In this document: positions 981-51,794 of the stretch, piece after piece
Layout of the letters: the number at the start of each line of letters is the position of its first letter
Position numbering within the stretch: the first letter of the stretch is position 1
From: Dimorphilus gyrociliatus
Taxonomy: Eukaryota; Animalia; Annelida
Assembly (NCBI GenBank): GCA_904063045.1
Contig: CAJFCJ010000012.1
Location: 2,351,180 to 2,415,179 of the forward strand
Length of the DNA stretch: 64,000 nucleotides
Direction: 5' to 3'
Position numbers and translations under genes: made by a program
Notes under the pieces: generated by a model
What the model was told of the DNA's origin: nothing
Databases searched by the model: none
What the model saw: only the letters and a program-made list of their open reading frames with translations

Positions 981-1761
981 ATGTCAATTGTATTTCTTAT
1001 ATTTATTGTCTTCTGTCCAACACAAATCTATATGATAGAAGCACGAACAGGTGCTACAGGTAAATCGCATCTTTTGCTTTTCCTTCTCTTTTCAATAATA
1101 CAACACTTTTCCTTCTTTTCTACTTTTTTTTTACAAGGTGATACCGGGCCTAGAGGACATACAGGATTCACAGGATATCCAGGACCAATTGGCCCAATGG
1201 GAAAAACGGGCGCAACAGGTAGTAAGGGCATAACTGGTGCGACTGGATATCGTGGTATGCCAGGACCAGTAGGACCCCCCGGACCTCCAGGAAAGACACA
1301 ATTTAACGGTACAGAATCTAACGCTACGCAGAAAATTCTTCAAGGTAAATCTCTTAAGTCTTAAATAAAGATTTCAAATTTTTGTCTGAAATGGATAAAA
1401 CTATAATTTTCAGGTGAAAAATCGAATCTAGAAGCTCCGGCCATGGCAACATCGGCACTTTCATTCGTTTTGAGTATTTTAAGCGTCATTCAGATAGTTT
1501 TCTTAAGATTTAAAATTAAAAAATATGATAATTCGCTTATAAAGAAGAACGAAATTAAAATAAATAAAAATGAAGAATCTCCTAAACAGAAATTAACGAT
1601 GAAGAAGAACATTTATTATCTTCCAGATGAAATTCCGTAACTATAATCAATGTATATTTATTAAATAGTACATATGTTATACTTTAATTAGGCATGGAGA
1701 AGTTCGTTTAGAACGTAAAATGTCGATAATGTCAGGAGAATATTTGGATTTACAAGATTAG
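981..1761 (+). CDS. Type-I transmembrane mini-collagen A (signal peptide, 19 Gly-X-Y, TM, Tyr-motif tail; ~192 aa)
   Basis: Exons 981-1059, 1138-1344, 1414-1636, 1692-1761, all GT-AG, phases 1/1/2, frame consistent. Product: [23 protein letters not shown]-(GAT...GKT x19)[11 protein letters not shown]...-[30 protein letters not shown]...[33 protein letters not shown]. Confidence 0.8.
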
Positions 1762-1812
1762 CGATTTAGTCTCACTCCATTCCACTACTCTCTCTCTCTT
1801 CGTAAAAACTTA

Positions 1813-1817
<5 letters not shown>

Positions 1818-1842
<25 letters not shown>
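1818..1842 (+). repeat. (TA)n microsatellite
   Basis: TA run between the two collagen-like genes. Confidence 0.9.
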
Positions 1843-1853
<11 letters not shown>

Positions 1854-2175
1854 AATTTATATAAGTATATTAATATATTAGTATATAGACAGTATATATA
1901 GAAATACAATCAGCTTATAGAGACATGCTGTATTACTATCTTTGATGAATTTTACTATATTTTTCATTCATATATATATGGATTAATGATTCTTAATAAA
2001 ATAATGAAATAACAAAAAACACGATCATGAGTCATATTATATAATACAATCAGTTTGGGAAGTTTTAACAATATGGGCTTATATATATATATAGCCTATT
2101 GCTAACATCCTACTGGGAACAAATATCATATTCAAACGTAGATCATTTGATCTTGTAAATGAAAAGAGTAAAGTT

Positions 2176-2881
2176 ATGTATGAATTTACAGTTTTTATAA
2201 TATTTTTACTCTTTTCGTCTGGAATCGGCGGGAAATATTACGTAGGATACACAGGCAATACTGGTTAGATTTGCTCTACTGTTCTTCTTTTATAATTTAA
2301 TCCTCCTTATTTTAAGGGATGGCTGGTCCATTTGGCCATCCGGGAGAAATGGGAGCGCCTGGCACCATAGGTAAAGAAGGAAAAAGAGGAGTAATGGGCG
2401 AAACTGGAGAGCCGGGAGAGGTTGGTCCAACTGGACCCACTGGCCCCAGAGGTCCAACTGGAGCTACAACTATTATAAACAAAACAATTGATCATATAGA
2501 AACTACGACAGGTAACTTTTAATACTTTTGAATCAAATTGCTAAAATATAAATTTAAAAAAGATGTTGTTCCAAGTAAACTGTCAGCGGCCCTCTATATC
2601 TCATCAATATCTATTATAATAAATCTACTCTGTTATCTCGGAACCTGTTCTCTAACTAGAAGATTAGAAAGGATGAAAGATATAGGAAAGGAAAGTTTGC
2701 GTACCAAGCGCTCCCTACCGCAACGCCCTAAAAACATCTACGAGTGAGTATTACAGTATTACAGAGTATAGAAAAAGCAGAATAAATCATTTCAAATATT
2801 TCATTTCTCCCCAACAGTGAATTGAATAGTTTATCATTAGGAATATGGGGGAAGAGCAACGACGTCTATCAGGAGATTTAA
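2176..2881 (+). CDS. Type-I transmembrane mini-collagen B (signal peptide, 19 Gly-X-Y, TM, Tyr-motif tail; ~175 aa)
   Basis: Exons 2176-2263, 2317-2511, 2563-2743, 2818-2881, GT-AG, phases 1/1/2. Product: [23 protein letters not shown]-(GYT...GAT x19)-TIINKTIDH...-[33 protein letters not shown]...[27 protein letters not shown]. Confidence 0.8.
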
Positions 2882-16943: not shown

Positions 16944-19900
16944 TTAACTATTCTTCGATATTTGTGCATTAATCCAGTCAACGTAGCTGGAAACTCTCGT
17001 AAATACACCTGGTTTCTTTGCCATTGCACATCCAACTCCCCAACTTGTTATGCCGTGTAGATAATATCTTCCGTCAGGACCCTTTGAACAGACTAGTGGA
17101 CCTCCGCTGTCACCCTGACAGGCATCCTTTTGACCTTCTGGATAGCCGGCGCACACCATCTCTTTCTTGTTAACACTCATTCCCAAATAATCTGGTTTGC
17201 TGCATTGTTCGTGACCTACAACTGGAAGAATAACTTGTTGAAGTTTTGCGCTGCCTTTGCTATCGCCGAAATGAGTTGCTCCCCAACCAGTTGTAAAGCA
17301 AAGTTTATCAGCTTCAACGTGTTCTTTGGTTAGACAAATTGGTTGTACTTCGTTATTGAATTTAATCTCCGTTGTTGTTTTGAATAGGGCAATATCGTTA
17401 TGCTAATAGAAAAATATATATTTATATTTATTTATAACTGTGAGTGAAGAGAACGATCGATTATTGATCTTTTGGAATACTTACATATCCTCTTGTATCG
17501 TAATTTTCGTGTATAATTAACTTGTCAACCTTGTGGTATTTTTGAGATCTGTCAGTCTTTGATCTATCGTGTTCACCTACAAGGATCCTCCAGAAATTCA
17601 TTGGATAATTTTTTCCACCGTTTACGCAATGAGCAGCGGTTACAATCCAACGGCTATTGATAATACTTCCACCGCAAACATGACCATAATCATCATTCGT
17701 ATAACTCCTTTGAGTTTGAGCTCTTAGCGAAATTTGCCATGGCCAAGAGTGAGGATTGGCTTCAATTCCACCGACGATACGTCCAAATTTGGGAAGGATT
17801 TTGGGCGATCCGCAAGTTTCAACTGTTGGAACGTCCTTTTGCGAGTAGGTGGCAATGAAACCCTTGTCCATAACGGTAGCGTCGGATTTAAATTCAATGT
17901 ACAATTTGTTATTAGAAGCGGTGATTTCATCAGGAATCTCGTCTCCGCAAAGACGCTTTAAGAGTTTCTTTTCACCATCAATTACTTCGTAAATATTGAC
18001 GTGATCATTGGTACATCCCATAGTTTCTTCAACGCTAAACATGGAGAAAGTTAAATGGACTAGTTTACCAGAAACGACTTCAATACTCCACGCGCATCTG
18101 GCCATATTTGGATATTGTTTTTCGACATTGTACATGGGAGATCGGAATTCACCTTCCGGAGCTGTCAATGTTAAAGTTTTGCCACCACAGCCCGGATGAA
18201 CTTTACGGATATAATCCCTCTTGATAAATTCTATTTTAGCTTCAAAACCTTTAAAACTATTTGTGCCGTCGGAAGCGAATTGAAGCAAAAGCTTGTTATT
18301 TGAAGAGGTAATTCCCTCTGAAGTTGGACTATGCTCGTTGCAGTATTTGCCTAATAGAACTCTTTCGTCGAAATTTTGACCATCATAGGCCGTGAGAGAA
18401 TCGAAAAGGCATGAAAACTCTTCTTCAATATCAAAGGTTTTGAATGTAAGGCGAACAACCTGAAAAAACAAGATTTATCAAAAGGATAATTGATTAAACG
18501 ATTCTCGAATACTTACAAAGTCGGCTGGTGCTTCAATTAGCCATTGACAATTGGCATCTTCCGGATAAGTGTCTAGGACGCCATAACCCGGGGAAACAAG
18601 CATTTTACTAGAGGATGTTATCTTTGCTGGCGATCCTTGACAACCAGGAGTTTTGGCTAAGATTTCGCTGGAAAGACTTTTCTTAATGAAGGTGATTACA
18701 CCCTCAAAACCAGCACCAGAAGGATTCGAACTAGAAACAAGACGTATAAAGAGGTGTCTTCCAGAACTGGGTAAGATCTCTTCCGGTTGTAGTTTATGTC
18801 CATTGCATACTTTTGCCAAACTAGTGGCTGATGCTGAATCACCGTCGAATATCTCAACATAATCAGTATCGCATTTCAGAGAGCCAAAATCGAAAAATGA
18901 GAATCCAAATTCAATAAGTTTGTCTTCGGGCGCTTCTATTAAATAGCTACAATCCGCATTGGATGGAACAACATTGGCACTTGAAACAATTGGAGATTTA
19001 AATCCAGATTCGGTTGTAATCTTTTTCGGAGATCCATTACATCCTGGTGTCCTTTTAAGAACATCCTTTGACAGCTTATGAACTATTTTTGGATGAAAAA
19101 TATAGGTTGTAGGAAAAGGAGGAATGCCAGGTCGGGTATACTAATGAATATTTACTTACAACTCACTGTTGGTTCTGGCGTTGTGGGAACTGGAGCTTTA
19201 GTAGTAGTTGGTCTGGGTGTTGTAGTAGGTACGGGATTCTTAACGAATTGGAATTTAATAATAAAACCACTTCCACCTCCATTTTCATTGGAAGAGAAAT
19301 GGACAAGGGCACTGTTTTTGTCAAAGTCGATATATCCATTTTTTGGTTTGTTATTATTACAGAATGGACCAATACTGGGATCGGAAGCTTCATTGGGCCC
19401 ATCGTAGATTTCTATACTATCTTCACGGCAGGCGAAGGATGATTGAATGTCGAATTGATCGAATTTTAGGCTGACGTGCTAGCGAATTTCGAAAGAGTAC
19501 TTATTAATAATTTATACATTAATATATTTAAAGATGTTTCCGCTTACATAGCCAGTCGGTGCTTGGATTAAGAAATAACAATCGGAATTTGGCGGGTATT
19601 GACCAGATGTTGTTAATGGTCCAACGAGGCGAACGTCTGGATCAGATACGACTGTTTGGCGTCCATCGCATCCTGCTATTGGCCTGTATTCTTGTTGTTT
19701 ACCAGTAGCACTATATGTCAGTTTAAATCCCTTATTGTTGGAAGTGAATGCGTCTGAATGGAATTTAACGCGGACGGTATCATAGTTTGTCGAAAGAGAC
19801 GCCGGTTTTTTGTTGCCGCAATATTTCGTACTCTTAACAGGAGAACCGTTGGATACGTAGGTAATTTCTAGATAGTCGTATTCACAATCTCCCGAGTGAT

Positions 19901-25278: not shown

Positions 25279-27961
25279 ATGACTCGATGGAACAACAGTG
25301 AAAAGAAGTTGGATAACAGACTTTTATTGAATATAGGTAAATTTCATCATTTGTCATTCATCATTCATTTCTATCTTGCGTTCCTTCTCTTCATCTATCA
25401 AGAACAACGCCGATATACTACTCAACAAGTCTAATCATTTTCCAGTCGCCTCTATTATCTTACTTTCATTTTTCTAAATGCCCATACTCGTTCTTACTTT
25501 TCCAATTGAGGCTGCTATCATTCTTCTTTGTTATACTCCATCTTAGAACATCAGTCAATCGTAAGAAAGACTAAAAGAAAGAAGATAAACTTTAACCTAA
25601 AGATGGCGTTGTCTTAATTAATAACACGTTGATTCATCTATCTCTAAGTCGAATTAATTTATATATTAATAAAGGATTTATCATGGACTTTAGGAGGAAC
25701 CAGACACGAAACCACCGTTTCCACTTTGGAAAGACTACCTAATACACGACTAGGAAAATTGGCAAAATTAAAAGAGGAAGACGAGGCTTACGATCAAGAA
25801 AAAGGAGAATATTTTTTCGATCGGCATTCAAGATGTTTCGAAGTTATACTGCAATATTACAGATCGGAAGAATTACACATAGACAGCAGTCTTTGCGGGA
25901 GCGTTCTACAAAGAGTAAGCTATTCATGCATTATAATACAATACATAGCATACAGTAATGAAAGAAAAAAAGAGATAAAAAGCTTCCATACGAAAACAGC
26001 AACACCGCAAAACTGCAAAAAGTTTGAAATGATAATAAAAAAATAAAAAGACAATAGACACGCTATTGTAGTATTGTAGTCATTCAACAAGACAACGTAA
26101 AAGGAAGCTCTTACGTACAAGCTAAACAAATATGTGATACCTATTTAAGGATACTATCGTATCAATATTAATTAAGGTTTTGTCAGCGTTATACGTAATT
26201 AGCTTGTAATTTTCGATTAGTAAGCAGCATTCTGGTGATAAAGAGAAAGAGAGAGAGAGAGAGATTGAAATTGTTGGCAATGCTTTCTAATTTATTTAAT
26301 ACTAGATCTTATATTTTCATATTAGGAATTTGAATTTTGGGGTCTTCAAGAACAAGATATAGAGCCGTGCTGTTGGTCCGATTATAGTAAATACACTGAA
26401 CATAAACAGACTTTGGCGGATCTTGATCAAAGTTTCGCCTTCGTTGAGGATACCGCGTGGTCCGACCGTTCTTCGGCCTATCGTCGGATTTCTCAACGAT
26501 TATGGACATTCTTGGAGGAACCAAGATCGTCCAGATTGGCAAAATTATATGCCATTATATCCATGTTTTTCGTTGTTCTTTCAATCGGAGTATTTGTATT
26601 GGAAACGCATAAACTATTCCAAGTAGACAAATATACGGGAAAGCCAATGACTGAAGTCGATCCCGACGACAGTACTCCAACAGGTAAGCTGGCTGACTGG
26701 CTATCTGGTTCTTTGATCATTATATATCTTTTATTATTTTCAGGATCAGTAGCCGTTTGCTGTTGTGAAAATGAACGCAAAAATAATACTTCCACCTTAG
26801 CTGAAACTCATATTGTCTTGAAATCGTTAGATTATGTGTGTGTTGTCTATTTTTCATTGGAGATTATTACGCGTGTTTTAGTCGCGCCCGATAAGAAGAA
26901 GTTTATTAAGAGTCCATTAAATATTATAGATCTTGTTTGCTTGTTGCCTCATTACGTAGCTATTGCTCTGGACGCTCTAGATACGTCGGGTGCCACTAGA
27001 ACTCTATTTAAATCTATCATGATGTTAAGGGTAATAAGAGTACTAAGAATATTCAAATTGATGAAACATTATTCAGCTTTCAAGATCCTCGTCTATACAA
27101 TTAAAGGTAAAATCAATCATCCAATCTCAATCTACGTTTCTTCTACTTCTCCATCATCATCCCTAATAACATTTGTCTCTTTATTTCCTAGTTTCGTCCA
27201 AAGAATTATTATTGATGATAATCTTTCTGCTGAGCGGAGTTCTTATGTTTGCCAGTCTAATACACTATGTAGAACCGGAGAATTTTCCAAATATACCTAT
27301 CGGAGTTTGGTGGGCTTTGGTAACTATGACAACAGTTGGATATGGCGATAAATATCCTATATCATACTTGGGATTCGTTATGGGTTCATTCTGCGTGATA
27401 TGCGGCGTACTTGTTATCGCTTTTACAGTCCCCATTGTCGTTAACAATTTCACGTTGTATTACTCCCATGCTCAGACTAGAATAAAGCTGCCGGCCAAGA
27501 AAAAGAAGGCCAGAAGGTTACTTATGGAAATGACTAGGGAAATGGGTAAAAGGAACGCTGAGAGGAAAAGGTCACAAGAACGCGAGAAGCAAAATGATAC
27601 TAAGAATGTACACTTTGACGAGTTGGACAGAGCGAAAGCGTCAAATAGGAATGTCAGAATTTCAAGTCATTCAAGCGACGACAATAATGCTTGTAGTCCT
27701 GTTGAAACAACTAAGCTGCAACATAAAAATTTAGCTAGAGAAATGTTAGCTAAGGCCGAAGATGCTCGTGGAAAGATGGAAGAACAAAAGAGAAAACAAG
27801 AAGAGTTGGTATCGAAAAAGAAGGAGGAAAGAGCTAAAAGACAGAGGCAATTAGCCAGTCAAGCGTCAAATCTACCTTCCATGCCGATAGATTACGTGGT
27901 AAGTCTAAAAAAAAAGGAGGAGAATGAGAGCATTATACAACTGTTGAATATTTATGAGTGA
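25279..27961 (+). CDS. Shaw: Shaw/Kv3-type voltage-gated potassium channel (3' end may be alternatively spliced)
   Basis: Splicing 25336 to 25694 restores the T1 start NRLLLNIGGTRHET. Also YFFDRH, the Zn motif HxxxxxC...CC, S4 LRVIRVLRIFKLMKH, pore WWALVTMTTVGYGD and S6 VIAFTVPIVV. Confidence 0.92.
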
Positions 27962-34167: not shown

Positions 34168-36084
34168 CTAGTTTAATTGGACTATACAATAACAAATAGG
34201 CCTAAGCTCTGGAACTCTATCCATAATGCAATGGGGCTGTTTACCGTATCGATTTATCCTCGATATTTGGGTCATATCCGCAGATAATGAATTATTAATT
34301 AGATTTAATTTGACGGTCGCCTCGTACCTTCCATTGTTTGGTAGGGTGATAAAATCAACCCTTATACGAGCATCATCTGCTTTCATTTCGTCTGATAAAT
34401 CAGCTACACGACCATGTTGATCGCTACTCTTTTTAAATTTTAATACATCGCTGTTATGCTCTAGTTTTAAAGCGGAAATAACAGAACCCAGCTTTAGCTT
34501 AGAACATGACTTAGAAAACGGCACAAGATGAGAATTAAACAGACTTATGACACTTTCGGCTGATTTCGTCACTAAGGGATCAGTTATTTTTAATTTTTTC
34601 CAAGAGAGACACGAACACCAGTGGGCTTCTATTCCAGCTTTGTTGCAAGTCCTATCTAAAGGTATGTCTTTTAAGATGGATAATCCTCTCTTCCTTTCAT
34701 CAATAACTTCGAAAGGATCAAAATTAAGAATATCCTCGAAGGTAGCGTGAATGTCGAAAGGTGTTGTTAGTCTGTTGGCATTTTGTTGGAGCGTTGCTCT
34801 GGCATTGGGATACATTTTATCAAAGTCGTCGGGTATTCTAATAGAAAAATATGGATTTCGCTCTTCGTATTTTCCCTGAATATGGGCTCTAAGCGAAAGA
34901 AATCTTGGTCCATGATCCGCCATTAATATGACGAAGGTATTTTTCAAAATATTATCGTCCTTAAGGTGCTTTAACCATTTCTTCATATCTTCATCAGCTA
35001 TCGATAATTGCTTAGTATAGCCGTGGGTATATACGGAATGGAATAGAAATGAGAATTTAGGCGTCTCCTCTCCTTTATACACTCTCCATAATTCGTCAAT
35101 CCAATTAGTCATCTGTTTATGAGTTGGAACCGAACCCAAACAGAATTTCTTATGAACAGCCCTCTCGAAAGGTCTCAGGTAATAGTCGGTTGGCGGATCC
35201 TTAAATCCTAGCATTCTAAATTGAAAAGTACCGAAGCTTTGTCCGTCCTCACCCCACTGGGTGACGTATCCATCGTTCGAAAATTGTTTCCATATCCAAG
35301 GGTGATTGTCGACTTGAACCGCATCTGCATGACCTCTCCTCGCCTCGGGTAATTCTACTTCCGTTTTGCCAGTTAAAATTGGTAAAAGAGCCTGAGGAGT
35401 GCCGTCGCCAACAATATTATAAGATTCTAGGACAGTTGCGTTAAGGACTTTAGTCCAATAGTGATGAGTTTGCGGAAGTAATCTCATCCACTGCATTCTG
35501 GACACACTATCAAAGCCAAACATAAGTACATTCCATTTCTTTCTACTTGCTTTTCGTTTATTCTTTTGGAATTTCTCTCTCTTCTTTATTGCCGAATAAT
35601 AGGTTCTAAATGTTTTGGTTAAACTATCCTTTCTTCCGATACAATCAAGTCGGAAGAAGTCGCTCGGTATCTTCGAACCAGCAACCAAACCAGTAATTTT
35701 TGCTTCCTCTCTCTCAGTAAAATCATTTACCCTTACAATTGGCGTTGCTTGGCATTGAATATCCGTGATATCAGTTACTTGAACTTGTAGTGTACCGTTA
35801 ATAACTATAATCCAATCTCTTTCACTTGAGCATCCCATAGGTTCAATATTATCTTCATTATATATTTTTCTTATCTCCTCAGGCCATAATTCTAGCTTGT
35901 CCTTAACACACTGAAGTCTTTTTGGGCTAACAATACTTTTACCTTGCAATAGTTGAATAATGCTATATTTACCACCATTAGTCTGACTTGAACCAAAACC
36001 TCCCCAACTTCGCAGAAAGAATATATAGGTAAAAGAAGAGAAGACAACTGATATAAAGATCAAATTCTTGAATCTACATTTCAT
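34168..36084 (-). CDS. DUF229 alkaline-phosphatase/sulfatase-superfamily type-II membrane protein (638 aa, single coding exon)
   Basis: N-terminal TM; NVLMFGFDSVSR, YNIVGDGTPQALLPILTG, LMADHGPRF, GKYEERNP, RLTTPFDIHAT, RTCNKAGIEAHWCSC and RINRYGKQPHC...CYC. Confidence 0.9.
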   Translation of the reverse strand: MKCRFKNLIFISVVFSSFTYIFFLRSWGGFGSSQTNGGKYSIIQLLQGKSIVSPKRLQCVKDKLELWPEEIRKIYNEDNIEPMGCSSERDWIIVINGTLQVQVTDITDIQCQATPIVRVNDFTEREEAKITGLVAGSKIPSDFFRLDCIGRKDSLTKTFRTYYSAIKKREKFQKNKRKASRKKWNVLMFGFDSVSRMQWMRLLPQTHHYWTKVLNATVLESYNIVGDGTPQALLPILTGKTEVELPEARRGHADAVQVDNHPWIWKQFSNDGYVTQWGEDGQSFGTFQFRMLGFKDPPTDYYLRPFERAVHKKFCLGSVPTHKQMTNWIDELWRVYKGEETPKFSFLFHSVYTHGYTKQLSIADEDMKKWLKHLKDDNILKNTFVILMADHGPRFLSLRAHIQGKYEERNPYFSIRIPDDFDKMYPNARATLQQNANRLTTPFDIHATFEDILNFDPFEVIDERKRGLSILKDIPLDRTCNKAGIEAHWCSCLSWKKLKITDPLVTKSAESVISLFNSHLVPFSKSCSKLKLGSVISALKLEHNSDVLKFKKSSDQHGRVADLSDEMKADDARIRVDFITLPNNGRYEATVKLNLINNSLSADMTQISRINRYGKQPHCIMDRVPELRPICYCIVQLN

Positions 36085-43396: not shown

Positions 43397-46300
43397 TTAT
43401 AAAAGGTCCATTATCTGCAATAAACAACAGTAATAATAATAGTAATAAGTTGTATATATATATATATATTTATGTATATGTATTAATATATCTATTGATC
43501 TGTACCCACCGGATTGCCATGTACGTCTTCTAGGTCTATGATATACTTATCGTCTTTACATTCTAAAACAACTGCCATAATAGTCTCCGTTTGTGCTATT
43601 GTTCTAAACTTTTCCTTTTCCGATGGACTCATGTTCATGTTTTCACAATTCCTAAGGGTAAACTTCAAAGCAGTCGGTGGAAGGTCTTCAATGAAACGCT
43701 TCTCTGGAATGGCTCTCAATTCTTCGCCGACCAATTGATCGGATTCGTTACCGAAGTCTAGAAATCTCACTTGAAATAGTGTATTTTCTTCAACCGACGT
43801 AACTACTGCTCTATAATACAAGTTATCATCAGGGTTGATTGCAAACACTAAATCACCAATTTGAATTTCTCCCTCAATTTTATAATTGTCGTCATCTTTT
43901 GAGAATAGTTCATTAGCTTCGTTTTGTAACGATACTAGTGCCGAAGCTATTTCGGGGCAGATAACTTGAGCTGTAAAATTTGAAGGATCGTTGAATTCGT
44001 AAATGATTACTCTAACAACAGTTCCATCGCAAAGTTCTAATTTCTTCAATTCTATATCTTTACATTTACAACTATTTGTTGCAGCAGATTTCGAAATAGC
44101 TTCTTTTGCGTCCTCTTCATTTGCCCAAGAGGCCAACTTAAAGTTGACTAGTGATTGTCGAAGACTCATTCCTTCAATAAACACATCTACAAATGCAAAA
44201 TCGCCAATAATTTCGGTGGCTTCAACGGAAACTAATTGTCTTGACACTAAACCCTGCAAAATAAGGATGTCAACTTATACATTTATATAATCATTGCAAT
44301 ATATAATATACTGTATTTAATGTTACCTTAAATGTCTTACAAGCTTCTGCTGACCATTTGTCTCCTTTCGATTCAATTCCGTATAGACTACAATGAACTG
44401 CCAAAGGTGGTATACATCTTAATATTTCCGGCATCATTTTAACATCTTCAGTATTGACTTGACATTTCCCTCCAATATCAAGATTTCTAACTGTAACTTT
44501 CGACTCGTTTACTTCAACTACTTTAGCCCTTTGCCATTTATTATGGCGCTTGACTAAAACAAGCATATCACGCTTTGGTTGAGGAAATGAACCAAGCTTC
44601 TCCGCTAGTTCTCTTGACCTTTCCTCTAGCTTTTGATTTATTTCTTTATTATCGTCGAGTTGAAAATAGAATGAATTGGGGTCATCCGCAACAATTATTT
44701 GCCCAAGAACTTGTTGATTTACAGGCAGTTTCACTGCAATGATCTTGTCTCTGTAGCCTGAATTCGTTTTATAATCTCCATTTCGATATCTTCTTCTATC
44801 ATCTGGAGCTCTGTTGGCCAATAGTTTTGCAGCTAATTTCTTTGAACGTATATAATCGACATCTAATGCTTTAATTGATTGACTTAGCAAGTCTTCTGAA
44901 TTATCTTCTCTATCTTCTTTTTTAATCGACCTCACCTTTGCTTCGCCAACGGAGTCAACAGTTGAGTTTATTTTCGTCGGACTTGAAGATGCTCTTTTTT
45001 CGTTGTCATTTGCAAATTTTTCTTCAATGTTACTTAATCTTTTCGATTCAGCTAATGGAGTTTTAGAACAACCAATAGCTCCAGTTACTTTCTGCTTTAA
45101 CACCTTTAAGGTATCATCATCCTGAAGGTTCAATGAGATATTCCTTTCATGGTAAACTTCGCTAACAGGTTTTAATAGAGTTTTATGATCGTAGCCTTTA
45201 AGACAATAGCCAGCAGTCAACTTCAAATCCATAAATTCAAACTTTTTGATGTCCTTTCTCGAATAGATATTGTGATTTTTCATGTCTTTTCGATTAACTG
45301 GCATAGCTGTTAAAGTATCAAAATAACCACTTTGCCCACCTTTCTTCTGTATATTTCGTATAGCGTTCATTTTATAATATACCGACGACTGCTTTAGTTT
45401 GATTAAGTCGGGTGTGAGATCTTCATCAGGTACTTCTTGAGCGCAAATTGAACTTTTATTAGTTCTATAGCCAAAGAGTATAGTTGGACAGTTAATTCCT
45501 GTAGAACATGTACCAATAAGTTCAACGAAAGCGACGTAAATTGGACATTTCGTAAATGAGGGATGAAGTTCATGTACTCCTTCAACGAGATTTTCAGATA
45601 TATAATATACAATATCTATACAAAAGTAATAATTTTGATGTTTTTCGGCTCTCATCCATTCTCCATTAAAGCAAATAGCCACAATCTCATTTAATTCTGG
45701 TTCATAGTCGGTAGTTAACGTTAGCTTGTTGTAGAAATCATTCATCTCTGAGAATAGCCTATTTAATTTATTATTTCCCAATATGCACAAAAGTTTAACT
45801 GATCGATTTTTGTAAATACCAATTACATTAACAAAGACAGCCTTATTTGGTTCGGGAAATTTAACTCCTGAATACTTATCGTATATAGATTTTAGAAAGC
45901 TAAAGTCTTCTTTTTTCATCTTATCACCAATTGTTACGGTTATTGTTTCTTCGAACGTAGTATCTACAATTTTATTATCATTTTGATCAACGGTAATCTT
46001 CCTTCCAGATGCAATAGAACTGTCTAAACTCTTTGCTACATCGTCTTTCTTCTCGAGAGTTTTTCCTTTCTCTCTATCTTCTTCGTTGTTCTTACTGAGG
46101 AATCGGATATCCTCGTACTTTTCTTTATCACTAGGAATCGATTTTCTTAACGGTATATCTTTAAGTGGGCTGATTTTATTCTTCAGTTCAGAAATGTCAC
46201 CTTGATCGGATGTTAACATTCTGTCATTTCGATTGTCGGTAGTATCTTCATCGAACGATTCTTGCTTCGAATGTTCATTTTGAAATTTCTTTAAAGCAAT

Positions 46301-48169
46301 TGACGGTGATTTCTCTCTTAAATATTCATTTTCTAGTTTTGAAAATTTCTTTCCAGTGACAACTTCATTGTCACAAGCTGTTGAATTTTCAGTCACATAT
46401 TTCTTAATACGAGACAAAACATCATTTAATCTGGAATCTCTAGCGCTAAGCTTTCTAGTCTTTTCATCGGCAATCGTTAAGTTTTCTTCAGGTGTATCTT
46501 TTACGGATACAGATAGAGTTCTATCGTAAAGTTTTCTAGCATCTCTTGGATATATTCTCGAGCCGTGCTTAAATCTTCTCACTGCACTCTGACATAGCAA
46601 CTCCAATTCGATTTCGGCTCCTGAGAATTCCTTGGTAAATATTTCGATAGATTCTGCCAAAAAATGATCTTCTAAATGGAAGAGTTGAGCTTGAGGAGGG
46701 CAAAGATATTCACTTCCTTCCGGTAAGTGGCGAACGTCTACAACACTTTCTATCCAACCATAATCAACAAAAAAAGCCGATCTATCTTCCAAGATTTTTA
46801 CCCTATACCATTTGTTATCTGTAGCCCTTTTTGCTACTTTCAAACTGACAAAATGATTTTTTAGATAATGCTTTTCTAAATTATTCAAGAGATATTCCAA
46901 ATGTTCAACTTTTTCTCGGTTAAATTGAACGTAAAAGTGTTGAAAATCTCGAAAATAAGATATATGTCCCTTATGGAGACCGTAAGAAGGTATAAAGTTA
47001 GCCATTTTCTTTGAAACTAACCATTCGCATAAGCTATTGCCAATTAGTTCCGATTTAAAATCTACATAATTGACCCCTCGAGAGACTGCTTTAACTATCA
47101 TGTCGACTTCTTCGTCTCTTAGCAATTGTTCAAAGATAATATCATAAATGCATACCCAATTTGAGAGGACGCTTGTTAAAGATAGGCCGAATAGTTTACA
47201 TTGAACAGGTTGAATTTCCAAATCCAGCATACTTTCTTTCAAAGCGTATAAGTTTTTCGTAGTAATAATCTTACATATGTCAATTAAATGAACGATCCAA
47301 GTATCTTCACCAAGAACTTCAAGTACTTTGGCACGATACAATCTTCCTTTGTATTCTGTTAAGGCCACGTGAAAACGTTCGGCGCTTGGTAATTCTTGTT
47401 TATCGCATTTGATTCCCTCAATAACGTCCCTTCTCGTTTCGGCCAAATATACATAAATATCATCCTGACAACTGGACCATGATAAACAGCTTACGGCTAC
47501 TCCCTAAAACAATGAAAAAAGCATGAATTTCTTTGATTAGATAATCTTAATAACACATATATAAAATAGAAGAAAAGGAACAATGAAACCTACTTTTCTC
47601 AGTTCACCTTTATGTAAAGCTGTACGTGGAAAATCGTCAAATCTTGCAGTACCTTTATCCCTAATAAAATCTTTTGTTTCTTGAGCCTGCAATGCTTTTT
47701 GAGAATTTTCGTAATTTTTTTTTAATTCTTCATAAACCGGATCGAGTTCTCCTCCCTCTATATCCTCCTTATCCCTAACCCTATTCTTACTCTGAGCAAC
47801 TCGTACAGTCAAGATGTGTTGGCCAAGTTGTCTGTTGTTGAAAATGTGGCATGCTCTAGAGGCGATTCTCGTGGGGACGGTAACGAACGCTATATCCTTC
47901 ATATTTTTATCTTTAGTAGTTACAACATCTACGTGAATGTTTAATTCGTCTTGAAAGAGATTTTTAAGTCCAATTTTTTCGAGTTCAGGAGGAAAATTTG
48001 TTACAAAAAGTCTAGCATAATTTCCTTGAGTTTCGGCATTTCTCATATCTCGACCAATACCAGACTTGTAAGTATTTAATGTTTCATCATTAAAGTCAAC
48101 ATTCATTGGATTCCATTCGTCCAAAGGAGTTTTTGGGTGAAATTTTGACTTTCTTAATTGTCCGTCCAT
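43397..48169 (-). CDS. RRM plus five Tudor domain protein (germline/piRNA Tudor family-like)
   Basis: RRM (RLFVTNFPPEL...IAFVTV...FNNRQLGQHILTVRVAQ), intron 47593-47504, a ~3.2 kb exon with four extended Tudors, then an exon with a fifth Tudor (GDLVFAINPDDNLYYRAVV...VRFLDFGN). The last short exon IMDLL* is tentative; the alternative stop is at 43492. Confidence 0.8.
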
Positions 48170-49057
48170 TTTGGAATAAAGTTTAAACTTTTTTTTTTCC
48201 AATATGAAGTTTCTTGTTGACTTGAAATAATATAATGTATATTTTAAGTATTTTATGAACAATGTTTGAATAAGTTTATATAGAAAGTTAATAGTATAAG
48301 TAAATCATAATTGCTAACCTTTATAAAGCAGCGTGGAAAACCTTTTGAATATTACGACATGCTAAAGTAGGGTTAAGTATTCCCAAAAAATTTTCCGTTT
48401 CCGGTTTAAAAAATTGACTGGAGGTTATTAGTTCATAAACACGTTTAATTCACTATAAAAGCAAAATGATATATATTTATATGTATGCATGAATGTATAT
48501 GCGTGTATTTTTTAGCTACAAATTAAACTTAATATAAAAAAAAACAACTTTTTAATAATATTGACAATTTAATAAAGAAAAAAATATGGTTTCTTTCCTG
48601 TATTTTTTTTGTAGATAATTTAAACGGAGATAGAATTAAGGCATTAAATATCAAATATTATAAAGAGAAAGACACAAAAAATATCTTTATACGTTCGAAG
48701 ATAAGGAATAGACTAGAACACAGAAATAGAGAATTTTTATGTCTAAAGTTCTTTTTTTTATTTTTTATTTTGCTTTGTAAAAATCCGCAAAGGTAAACTA
48801 TATGTAAGCTAAAAATGTCTAATGAAATAAAAGATCATTTAATTTACTATTAATAGCTATATTTAATGGATTATAATGAATAATAATATTACGCGACAAA
48901 AACATTACAACCATTTTGCTCTTTGATTATGATTTGTCTTCTTTTTGTCCGACTTATTACATAAGATTAACAAAGAGAAGGTAACGCAATCGTCTCTCCT
49001 TTTAATTACGAATTTACGTTTCGACTGTTGCTTGCTAGTAACAATTTGACTTGAAAC

Positions 49058-50759: not shown

Positions 50760-51794
50760 ATGTTTCAAAATTGGTCAAACTTAACTAAGAACGTGTCGGG
50801 TTGGTTAGGGGCAACAAGAGGAGACGAGTCCGATACTGAAGTTATCAAGGTTGGTGACGCAACGATTCCTGAAAATGATACTGAAAAAGCAAAGGAACGA
50901 TCAACCCCTGATGTAGAAGAAGCAAAAGAGACTACAGAAGAGACAGGCGAAGCGCCTGGAATTTCTGAACAACTGGAGGAAGTCTCTGCAAAAGCAATAA
51001 ATTCTGCAAAGGAATGGGGTAGTTATCTTATGACAGTTGGAAAAATGGTTACCGATAAGGCTGCTGCAACTGCTAAGAATGTTAAGAGCACAGTGGAAGA
51101 GAAAACGATTATCGGAGATTTTGAAAAAGAACAGGAAAAGTTTGTAACTGAAAATAAAGAACGAACCAGTAAGTCGGAAGTAGCTGTTCCTCCATGGATA
51201 GGGTTTAACGAGGAGGAGCAAATGAAATCTCAAATCCTAGCCTTATCCAGCGATAAGAGAAACTTTGTTAGAAACCCTCCTTCTGGTGTTCAATTTGAAT
51301 TTGATTTTAGCACTTCATACCCAGTTGCCATGGCCATGTTACAGGAAGACCAAAAGTTAAATAAAATGCGATTTGAACTGGTCCCTAAACACGTTAAAGA
51401 GGAAGTATTCTGGAGAAATTACTTTTACAGGGTATCTCTTATCAAACAGAGTGCTCAACTATCTAGTTTGGAACAGGAACGAGAAACCGAACAACCGATA
51501 CCAGAACCCAATTTGAAAAGTTCCACACAAGAGTTGTCTTCAAGTCCTACAGAGCACGAATTTATAAGCGATGACTATACAGAATCGTTAAATGAAGAAG
51601 AACTACGAAAAGATATGGAACAGCTTAAGGTTAATGAAAAGGAGGAAAAAGGTAAGGCAGCTCAAGTTGACGAAGAAGAACCAGAATGGGATCAACTAGC
51701 CGCCGAATTGCAAGAATACGAAATGGTTGCCGAGGCTGACGATGAAATCGATCAGGAATTATTGGACCAGATCGAAAAAGAGACGTCATCTTAA
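50760..51794 (+). CDS. SYAP1: Synapse-associated protein 1 (BSD domain), intronless CDS
   Basis: PPWIGFNEEE...QILALSSDKRNFVRNPPSGVQFEFD and LNKMRFELVPKHVKEEVFWRNYFYRVSLIKQS; acidic tail. Confidence 0.93.
   Translation: MFQNWSNLTKNVSGWLGATRGDESDTEVIKVGDATIPENDTEKAKERSTPDVEEAKETTEETGEAPGISEQLEEVSAKAINSAKEWGSYLMTVGKMVTDKAAATAKNVKSTVEEKTIIGDFEKEQEKFVTENKERTSKSEVAVPPWIGFNEEEQMKSQILALSSDKRNFVRNPPSGVQFEFDFSTSYPVAMAMLQEDQKLNKMRFELVPKHVKEEVFWRNYFYRVSLIKQSAQLSSLEQERETEQPIPEPNLKSSTQELSSSPTEHEFISDDYTESLNEEELRKDMEQLKVNEKEEKGKAAQVDEEEPEWDQLAAELQEYEMVAEADDEIDQELLDQIEKETSS

Follow-up and report, generated by a model that had tools for sequence, protein, structure and literature searches.

Two neighbouring annelid genes with hidden terminal exons predict compact type-I membrane collagens bearing conserved cytoplasmic tyrosine motifs

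The window analysed here is a 64,000-nt stretch of animal DNA with a GC content of 31% (G000:C12:2351180-2415179 of a 78-Mb assembly) from Dimorphilus gyrociliatus, whose published genome measures 73.8 Mb with a median intron of 66 bp (PMC7854359). Reading the interval 960-2900 in three frames reveals two neighbouring genes on the + strand, A (981-1761) and B (2176-2881), which are built on a common plan. Their exons and introns are given in Table 1, together with the other genes that Pfam recognises in the window and the related loci discussed below. Simple repeats lie on both sides of gene A, a (TC)n microsatellite at 938-966 just 5' of its start codon and a (TA)n run at 1818-1850 in its 3' flank. 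The raw open reading frame 888-1364 runs through intron 1 of the same gene, and retention of that intron would insert 26 residues.

Table 1. Features of the window and of related loci elsewhere in the genome; a slash marks an exon-intron boundary
Feature	Position	Strand	Remarks
Gene A exon 1	981-1059	+	translation start and hydrophobic N-terminus resembling a signal peptide, then the first Gly-X-Y triplet; donor ACAG/GTAAAT, phase 1
Gene A intron 1	1060-1137	+	78 nt, in frame, without stops
Gene A exon 2	1138-1344	+	collagen repeats and stalk with NGT and NAT sequons; PF01391, E 1.3e-9
Gene A intron 2	1345-1413	+	69 nt, phase 1
Gene A exon 3	1414-1636	+	transmembrane helix, basic juxtamembrane stretch, predicted cytoplasmic tail ending in conserved 12-residue island; 67% identical to the orthologue
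Gene A intron 3	1637-1691	+	55 nt, phase 2; donor CC/GTAACT, acceptor TTAATTAG/G
Gene A exon 4 (terminal)	1692-1761	+	split Pro codon and 22 residues, (P)HGEV...SGEYLDLQD; stop TAG at 1759-1761
Gene B exon 1	2176-2263	+	translation start and hydrophobic N-terminus, then the first Gly-X-Y triplets; donor ACTG/GTTAGA, phase 1
Gene B exon 2	2317-2511	+	collagen repeats, stalk with NKT sequon; PF01391, E 9e-10; donor ACAG/GTAACT
Gene B exon 3	2563-2743	+	transmembrane helix; tail with conserved island KRSLP..PKN(I)Y
Gene B intron 3	2744-2817	+	74 nt, phase 2; donor GA/GTGAGT, acceptor CCCCAACAG/T
Gene B exon 4 (terminal)	2818-2881	+	split Asp codon and 20 residues, (D)ELNS...DVYQEI; stop TAA at 2879-2881
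CUB-trypsin protease	17461-18819	-	Pfam, window
Ion_trans channel	26413-27961	+	Pfam, window
DUF229/sulfatase-like protein	34168-36084	-	single-exon; Pfam, window
Multi-Tudor protein with RRM	43492-48262	-	Pfam, window
BSD-domain protein	50760-51794	+	Pfam, window
Tandem pair, collagen repeats then transmembrane helix	L055 = G000:C23:411000-416000	-	short tails, ordinary stops, no C-terminal Yxx[LI]
Single gene, collagen repeats then transmembrane helix	L053 = G000:C13:128000-134000	+	short tail, ordinary stop, no C-terminal Yxx[LI]
Gene C, larger collagen gene	L011:1059-2053 = G000:C3 ~964.2-965.14 kb	+	transmembrane exon L011:1703-1807, phase-0 donor ACC/GTAAGT
Syk/ZAP-70-type gene, two SH2 then tyrosine-kinase domain	L041 = G000:C6:1733300-1736800	-	best solved-structure matches are the tandem SH2 of SYK and ZAP-70

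When Pfam was run on every exon of A and B, Collagen was the sole family matched and the tails gave no match at all. Counted across the junction of exons 1 and 2, each gene encodes 19 Gly-X-Y triplets. Residues 1-19 of gene A are hydrophobic (KD19 = 2.18), and the hydrophobic 19-mers of exon 3 in the two genes (KD 1.84-2.26) are followed by basic residues and then by a hydrophilic tail. Collagen repeats are thus combined with one transmembrane helix, as in MACIT-type collagens, while the N-terminal cytosolic domain and signal-anchor of a type II orientation are found in neither protein. Because a hydrophobic N-terminus stands at the start codon, the helix lies near the C-terminus with basic residues behind it, and the N-glycosylation sequons sit between collagen and helix (in both genes and in both lineages compared below), A and B are predicted to have type-I topology, with the collagen outside and a cytoplasmic tail of some 60-75 residues inside. 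The 19 triplets presumably form a short extracellular collagen triple helix, and hence a trimer.

Read without splicing, both genes seem to stop at the end of exon 3. In gene A this exon closes with ...GAA ATT CC/GTAACT, where the donor GT occupies 1637-1638 and the TAA that reads as a stop without splicing covers 1638-1640; in gene B it closes with ...TAC GA/GTGAGT, with GT at 2744-2745 and TGA at 2745-2747, each stop occupying bases 2-4 of the intron. An earlier note on this DNA had proposed that these stops overlap splice donors and that phase-2 splicing to acceptors at 1691 and 2817 adds short exons ending in SGEYLDLQD (A) and YQEI (B). Its coordinates and frames are as claimed, and both endings were reproduced by reading and are conserved in the orthologous locus described below. 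The same note placed a shared KNIY directly before intron 3, which is exact for gene B, where the motif lies one codon before the intron, but not for gene A, where it lies seven codons before. The last exons add 23 codons to A and 21 to B. At 55 and 74 nt the third introns fall within a 50-80 nt range, the other introns of the two genes measuring 78, 69, 53 and 51 nt, and the GTAACT donor of gene A recurs at intron 2 of gene B, so the weaker-looking donor is in local use.

Using single exons as queries throughout, we searched 1.84 billion representative proteins with exon 3 of gene A and obtained a single match (P0002, 69% identity), an open reading frame predicted without splicing from genomic contigs in another sample set. 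A word search with P0002 led to no further lineages; the one match to the stop-free interval 981-1344 in such a search was an unrelated collagen-like protein, and no public protein for gene A emerged. The comparison covers one other lineage, a diverged sister, in which a 14-kb locus (L038) is syntenic with the window, carries A and B in the same order and shares ~74% DNA identity in coding blocks. For A and for B alike, intron 3 interrupts the same codon in phase 2 in the two lineages. The donors in L038 are spelled AA/GTTAGT after exon 3 of A and GG/GTTAGT after exon 3 of B (...PPKNYG), neither junction contains an in-frame stop, and read-through would append ~47 (A) or 63 (B) codons of T-rich junk. 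Intron 3 measures 94 nt (A) and 74 nt (B) there, and the exons downstream are exactly equal in length to those of the window; they lie in a different frame from the exon 3 read-through and can be reached only by splicing. One alternative phase-0 splice pair is possible in the L038 orthologue of A, and it leaves the C-terminus unchanged.

The pattern of change in these last exons is that of coding sequence. In L038 gene B ends ...GKDNQVYQEI-stop, with VYQEI-stop identical to the window through three synonymous changes; the last 16 codons of gene A comprise 7 unchanged, 7 with synonymous differences and 2 with replacements, and 13 of its last 15 residues are the same as in the orthologue. The terminal stops keep their position in both lineages with differing spelling, and the remaining two reading frames show lower conservation and are interrupted by stops. 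Identity in intron 3 and in 150 nt of 3' flank is at the level of shuffled sequence (0.47 for intron 3 of gene A against 0.48 when shuffled), and the orthologous intron 3 of gene B, also of 74 nt, has no significant similarity to that of the window. Constraint of a coding type in exon 4, with none in intron 3 or the flank, argues that the terminal exons are real; the introns, moreover, have GT-AG ends, a size typical of the genome, a conserved position and phase and codon-type conservation downstream. On this comparative evidence the terminal exons of A and B are real coding sequence, a fourth exon behind a short phase-2 intron, and what looks like a stop codon where exon 3 ends is, as judged from the junctions, only the TAA or TGA that a GTAA or GTGA donor yields in phase 2.

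Two readings of the locus that differ from this can be weighed against the same data. If the genes ended at the apparent stops, the downstream frames and splice-like signals would be products of chance in an AT-rich 3' UTR, and chance open frames of ~22 codons do occur at roughly 1 in 6-8 in DNA of 31% GC. An AATAAA also stands at 2781-2786, inside intron 3 of gene B and 35 nt past its TGA, although it is absent from the orthologous intron and is probably there by chance, with intronic polyadenylation as the alternative. As a control for chance we examined all 200 ends of frames of at least 60 codons in the window, asking that a donor overlap the stop, that a pyrimidine-rich acceptor follow 45-100 nt later and that at least 19 codons be gained; eight qualified, several of which are probably true internal introns, and among these eight only A and B have Yxx[LI] within the last 8 residues of the extension. 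The pattern thus has a base rate of no more than 3-4% for each ORF end, yet both neighbouring genes show it. Neither junction has a stop in the sister lineage, where the last-exon peptides are kept, change is mainly synonymous and the stop position is conserved while the flanking non-coding DNA cannot be aligned. An end at the apparent stops is already contradicted by these comparative data, and we regard it as extremely improbable.

The other reading, which builds on the earlier note, accepts the exons and takes the paired tyrosines of each tail as ITAM-like modules that recruit a Syk-family kinase, and it treats retention of intron 3 as a regulated switch by which the distal motif is lost. 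The canonical ITAM is YxxL/I-x6-8-YxxL/I, with a spacer of up to about 12 in accepted variants. Gene B of the window offers YDEL-x14-YQEI, and the genome encodes a kinase of the required type, an SH2-SH2-kinase gene at G000:C6:1733913-1735791(-), beside some 40 or more SH2 genes and a rich set of tyrosine kinases, so ITAM-type signalling is possible in this animal. The tails of A and B, however, fail its defining features. The proximal tyrosines of gene A stand in YYLP and YLPD, with P and D at +3, and lie 23-24 residues from the distal tyrosine, whose YLDL alone fits YxxL/I. In gene B the two motifs fit in the window species only; the 14 residues between the L and the second Y are outside the 6-8 as well as the ~12 limit, and the proximal YDEL is replaced by YGQF in the sister lineage. 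The expectation that the motifs are conserved in orthologues is accordingly borne out for the distal YxxL/I of both genes but not for the proximal motif of B. The switch fares no better: retention of intron 3 would indeed stop translation at once in this species, but a retained phase-2 intron reads xxG followed by T-R-A if the donor is GTAA or GTGA, and a TAA or TGA is therefore automatic. With its GTTAGT donors the sister lineage has no such stop, and retention there adds unrelated codons instead. A truncated product could still arise in this species if intron 3 is retained, but this is neither conserved nor designed. Judged by their motifs the A and B tails are not ITAMs, and we consider the combined ITAM and switch proposal very unlikely. 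What survives of the earlier interpretation is that the exons are real and that each tail holds two conserved tyrosine islands.

These islands stand out against a fast-changing background. Identity between the lineages is 43-51% in the collagen exons and 37% in exon 3 of B, and the stretches that survive are the transmembrane helices, in A a 12-residue island closing exon 3 and the C-terminal 15 residues, and in B KRSLP..PKN(I)Y and GK.N.VYQEI. The exon 3 island of A, which includes NIYYLPDE, is identical at 12 of 12 positions in L038; the proximal island of B reads PKN(I)Y-x-x-[LF]; and the distal motif falls within the last 4-8 residues of each protein (EYLDLQD-end in A, VYQEI-end in B). A strictly conserved Tyr is held by all four islands, two per tail. 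In this two-lineage comparison no part of the otherwise rapidly evolving tails is better conserved than the tyrosine islands, which argues for tails that bind something and do not act as a mere anchor. The number of Gly-X-Y triplets is also kept in L038 (19-20 in the orthologue of A and 19 in that of B; window 981-2511 against L038:3283-5060) despite the 43-51% identity of the collagen exons, and helix length rather than sequence seems to be under selection.

We contend that A and B are best read as a tandem pair of lineage-restricted type-I membrane collagens whose YxxΦ-type tyrosine motifs would recruit cytosolic adaptors, a proposal to which we give somewhat better than even chances. Signal peptide, 19 triplets, glycosylated stalk and one transmembrane helix would together make a trimeric collagenous surface receptor, to which short linear motifs of the YxxΦ type in the tails may draw cytosolic adaptors. 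The likeliest partners would be the mu subunits of clathrin adaptors, through which a collagenous receptor that binds a ligand would be endocytosed or sorted, and the distal motif may serve in phosphotyrosine docking as well. The YxxΦ reading is favoured because three of the four islands fit it in both lineages, namely A-distal YLDL, B-proximal YDEL/YGQF with its L/F interchange, and B-distal YQEI, and because the distal ones stand at the extreme C-terminus. The A-proximal island does not fit; since NIYYLPDE is fully conserved, sorting cannot explain everything. Against the motif as a family hallmark, the collagen-transmembrane relatives on contigs C23 and C13 have short tails without such motifs.

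Much of the same evidence can be read as phosphotyrosine docking of another kind than the ITAM. The conserved tyrosines would then be kinase substrates, each chain offering single SH2 sites of which collagen trimerisation gathers three, in a hemITAM-like manner; YQEI and YLDL would be putative sites for Src-type or Syk-type SH2 domains, and YYLP, as YxxP, for those of the Crk/Abl type. The motif preferences of SH2 domains are known from peptide-library work, the Src-family optimum being pYEEI, and hemITAM receptors signal as dimers. Docking accounts for the strictly conserved Tyr in all four islands and for the A-proximal island, identical throughout though it is not YxxΦ, and the rich set of SH2 and tyrosine-kinase genes, the Syk/ZAP-70-type gene included, is in keeping with it. 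The likeness of YQEI to pYEEI and the acidic residues before two of the tyrosines speak against sorting alone and favour phosphorylation. On the other hand, basic residues (KKN, PKN) precede the proximal tyrosines and are disfavoured by most tyrosine kinases, the L to F change at +3 of the B-proximal motif, which the mu subunits of adaptors accept, is unusual in SH2 sites of the Syk type, and the tails have no acidic prefix of the DEDG type found in hemITAMs. We hold docking to be a close rival, though the less probable of the two; sorting and phosphotyrosine docking are not mutually exclusive.

When the animal's own genome was searched for proteins similar to exon 3 of either gene, no paralogue emerged, and A and B failed to find each other; a weak match to locus L003 in these searches was dismissed as noise. 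A scan of collagen loci by architecture returned four relatives that combine collagen with a transmembrane helix, the pair on C23, the gene on C13 and gene C on C3. When the hidden-exon criteria were applied to the first three, none qualified (0/3), and the feature is therefore not general to the collagen-transmembrane architecture. The putative last exon of gene C (45 codons, L011:1916-2053) has all four of its four Tyr in Yxx[LI], and its YSKL-x6-YTTI has canonical ITAM spacing. An orthologue search with the collagen exon of gene C gave generic collagen-like proteins, the one examined being on a phage contig, and recovered no orthologue. It can be speculated that A, B and possibly gene C are undescribed collagen-scaffolded receptors of an immune or phagocytosis type, in which the three single phosphotyrosine motifs of a trimer would recruit Syk across chains; this Syk-coupled reading draws mainly on the putative last exon of gene C, and we think it improbable.

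Among known proteins, collagens XIII, XVII, XXIII and XXV, SR-A/MARCO, collectin-12 and ectodysplasin are likewise single-pass and trimerising, with a Gly-X-Y ectodomain. These membrane collagens and collagenous receptors are type II proteins with the N-terminus inside and no cleaved signal peptide, and they are much larger, whereas A and B combine an N-terminal signal-like segment with a C-terminal transmembrane helix (type I) and contain no domain beyond their short run of 19 triplets; in the exon searches no sequence relationship to them beyond the collagen repeat was found. The role proposed for A and B resembles that of the class A scavenger receptors, in which the collagenous part binds ligand and a short cytoplasmic tail internalises, with the topology inverted. 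To our knowledge the membrane collagens described so far are all type II, and our literature search for type-I membrane collagens with ITAM or other tyrosine-motif tails found no description.

With ITAM and hemITAM receptors (Fc receptor gamma chain, CD3 chains, Drosophila Draper, CLEC-2, Dectin-1), A and B share conserved YxxL/I in short tails and a Syk-family kinase in the same genome; they differ in that canonical spacing and a second YxxL/I are missing or not conserved, the acidic prefix is lacking and there is no homology. YxxΦ signals, such as YTRF of the transferrin receptor, GYQTI-end of LAMP-1 and GYEVM-end of CD63, are cytosolic and consist, as in A and B, of a Tyr with a bulky hydrophobic residue at +3. 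Gene B has its motif at the very C-terminus, as lysosomal membrane proteins do, and the L/F interchange at +3 would be tolerated. Lysosomal signals, however, lie 6-9 residues from the membrane and the A/B motif ~60-75 away, the A-proximal island does not fit, and the adaptor binding of A and B is a prediction.

At the level of annotation, this work corrects the gene models of two unannotated-looking genes, and in short-intron genomes an in-frame stop that overlaps a phase-2 GTRA donor should not count as the end of a gene. The family appears to be restricted to one small annelid clade. Two diverged lineages have kept the cytoplasmic tyrosine motifs and the number of triplets, 19, of a compact type-I membrane collagen while its remaining sequence drifted, which suggests a receptor that depends on the length of its stalk and on the signals in its tail. 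Should the tails prove to traffic or signal as proposed, A and B would represent a new way to build a trimeric receptor.
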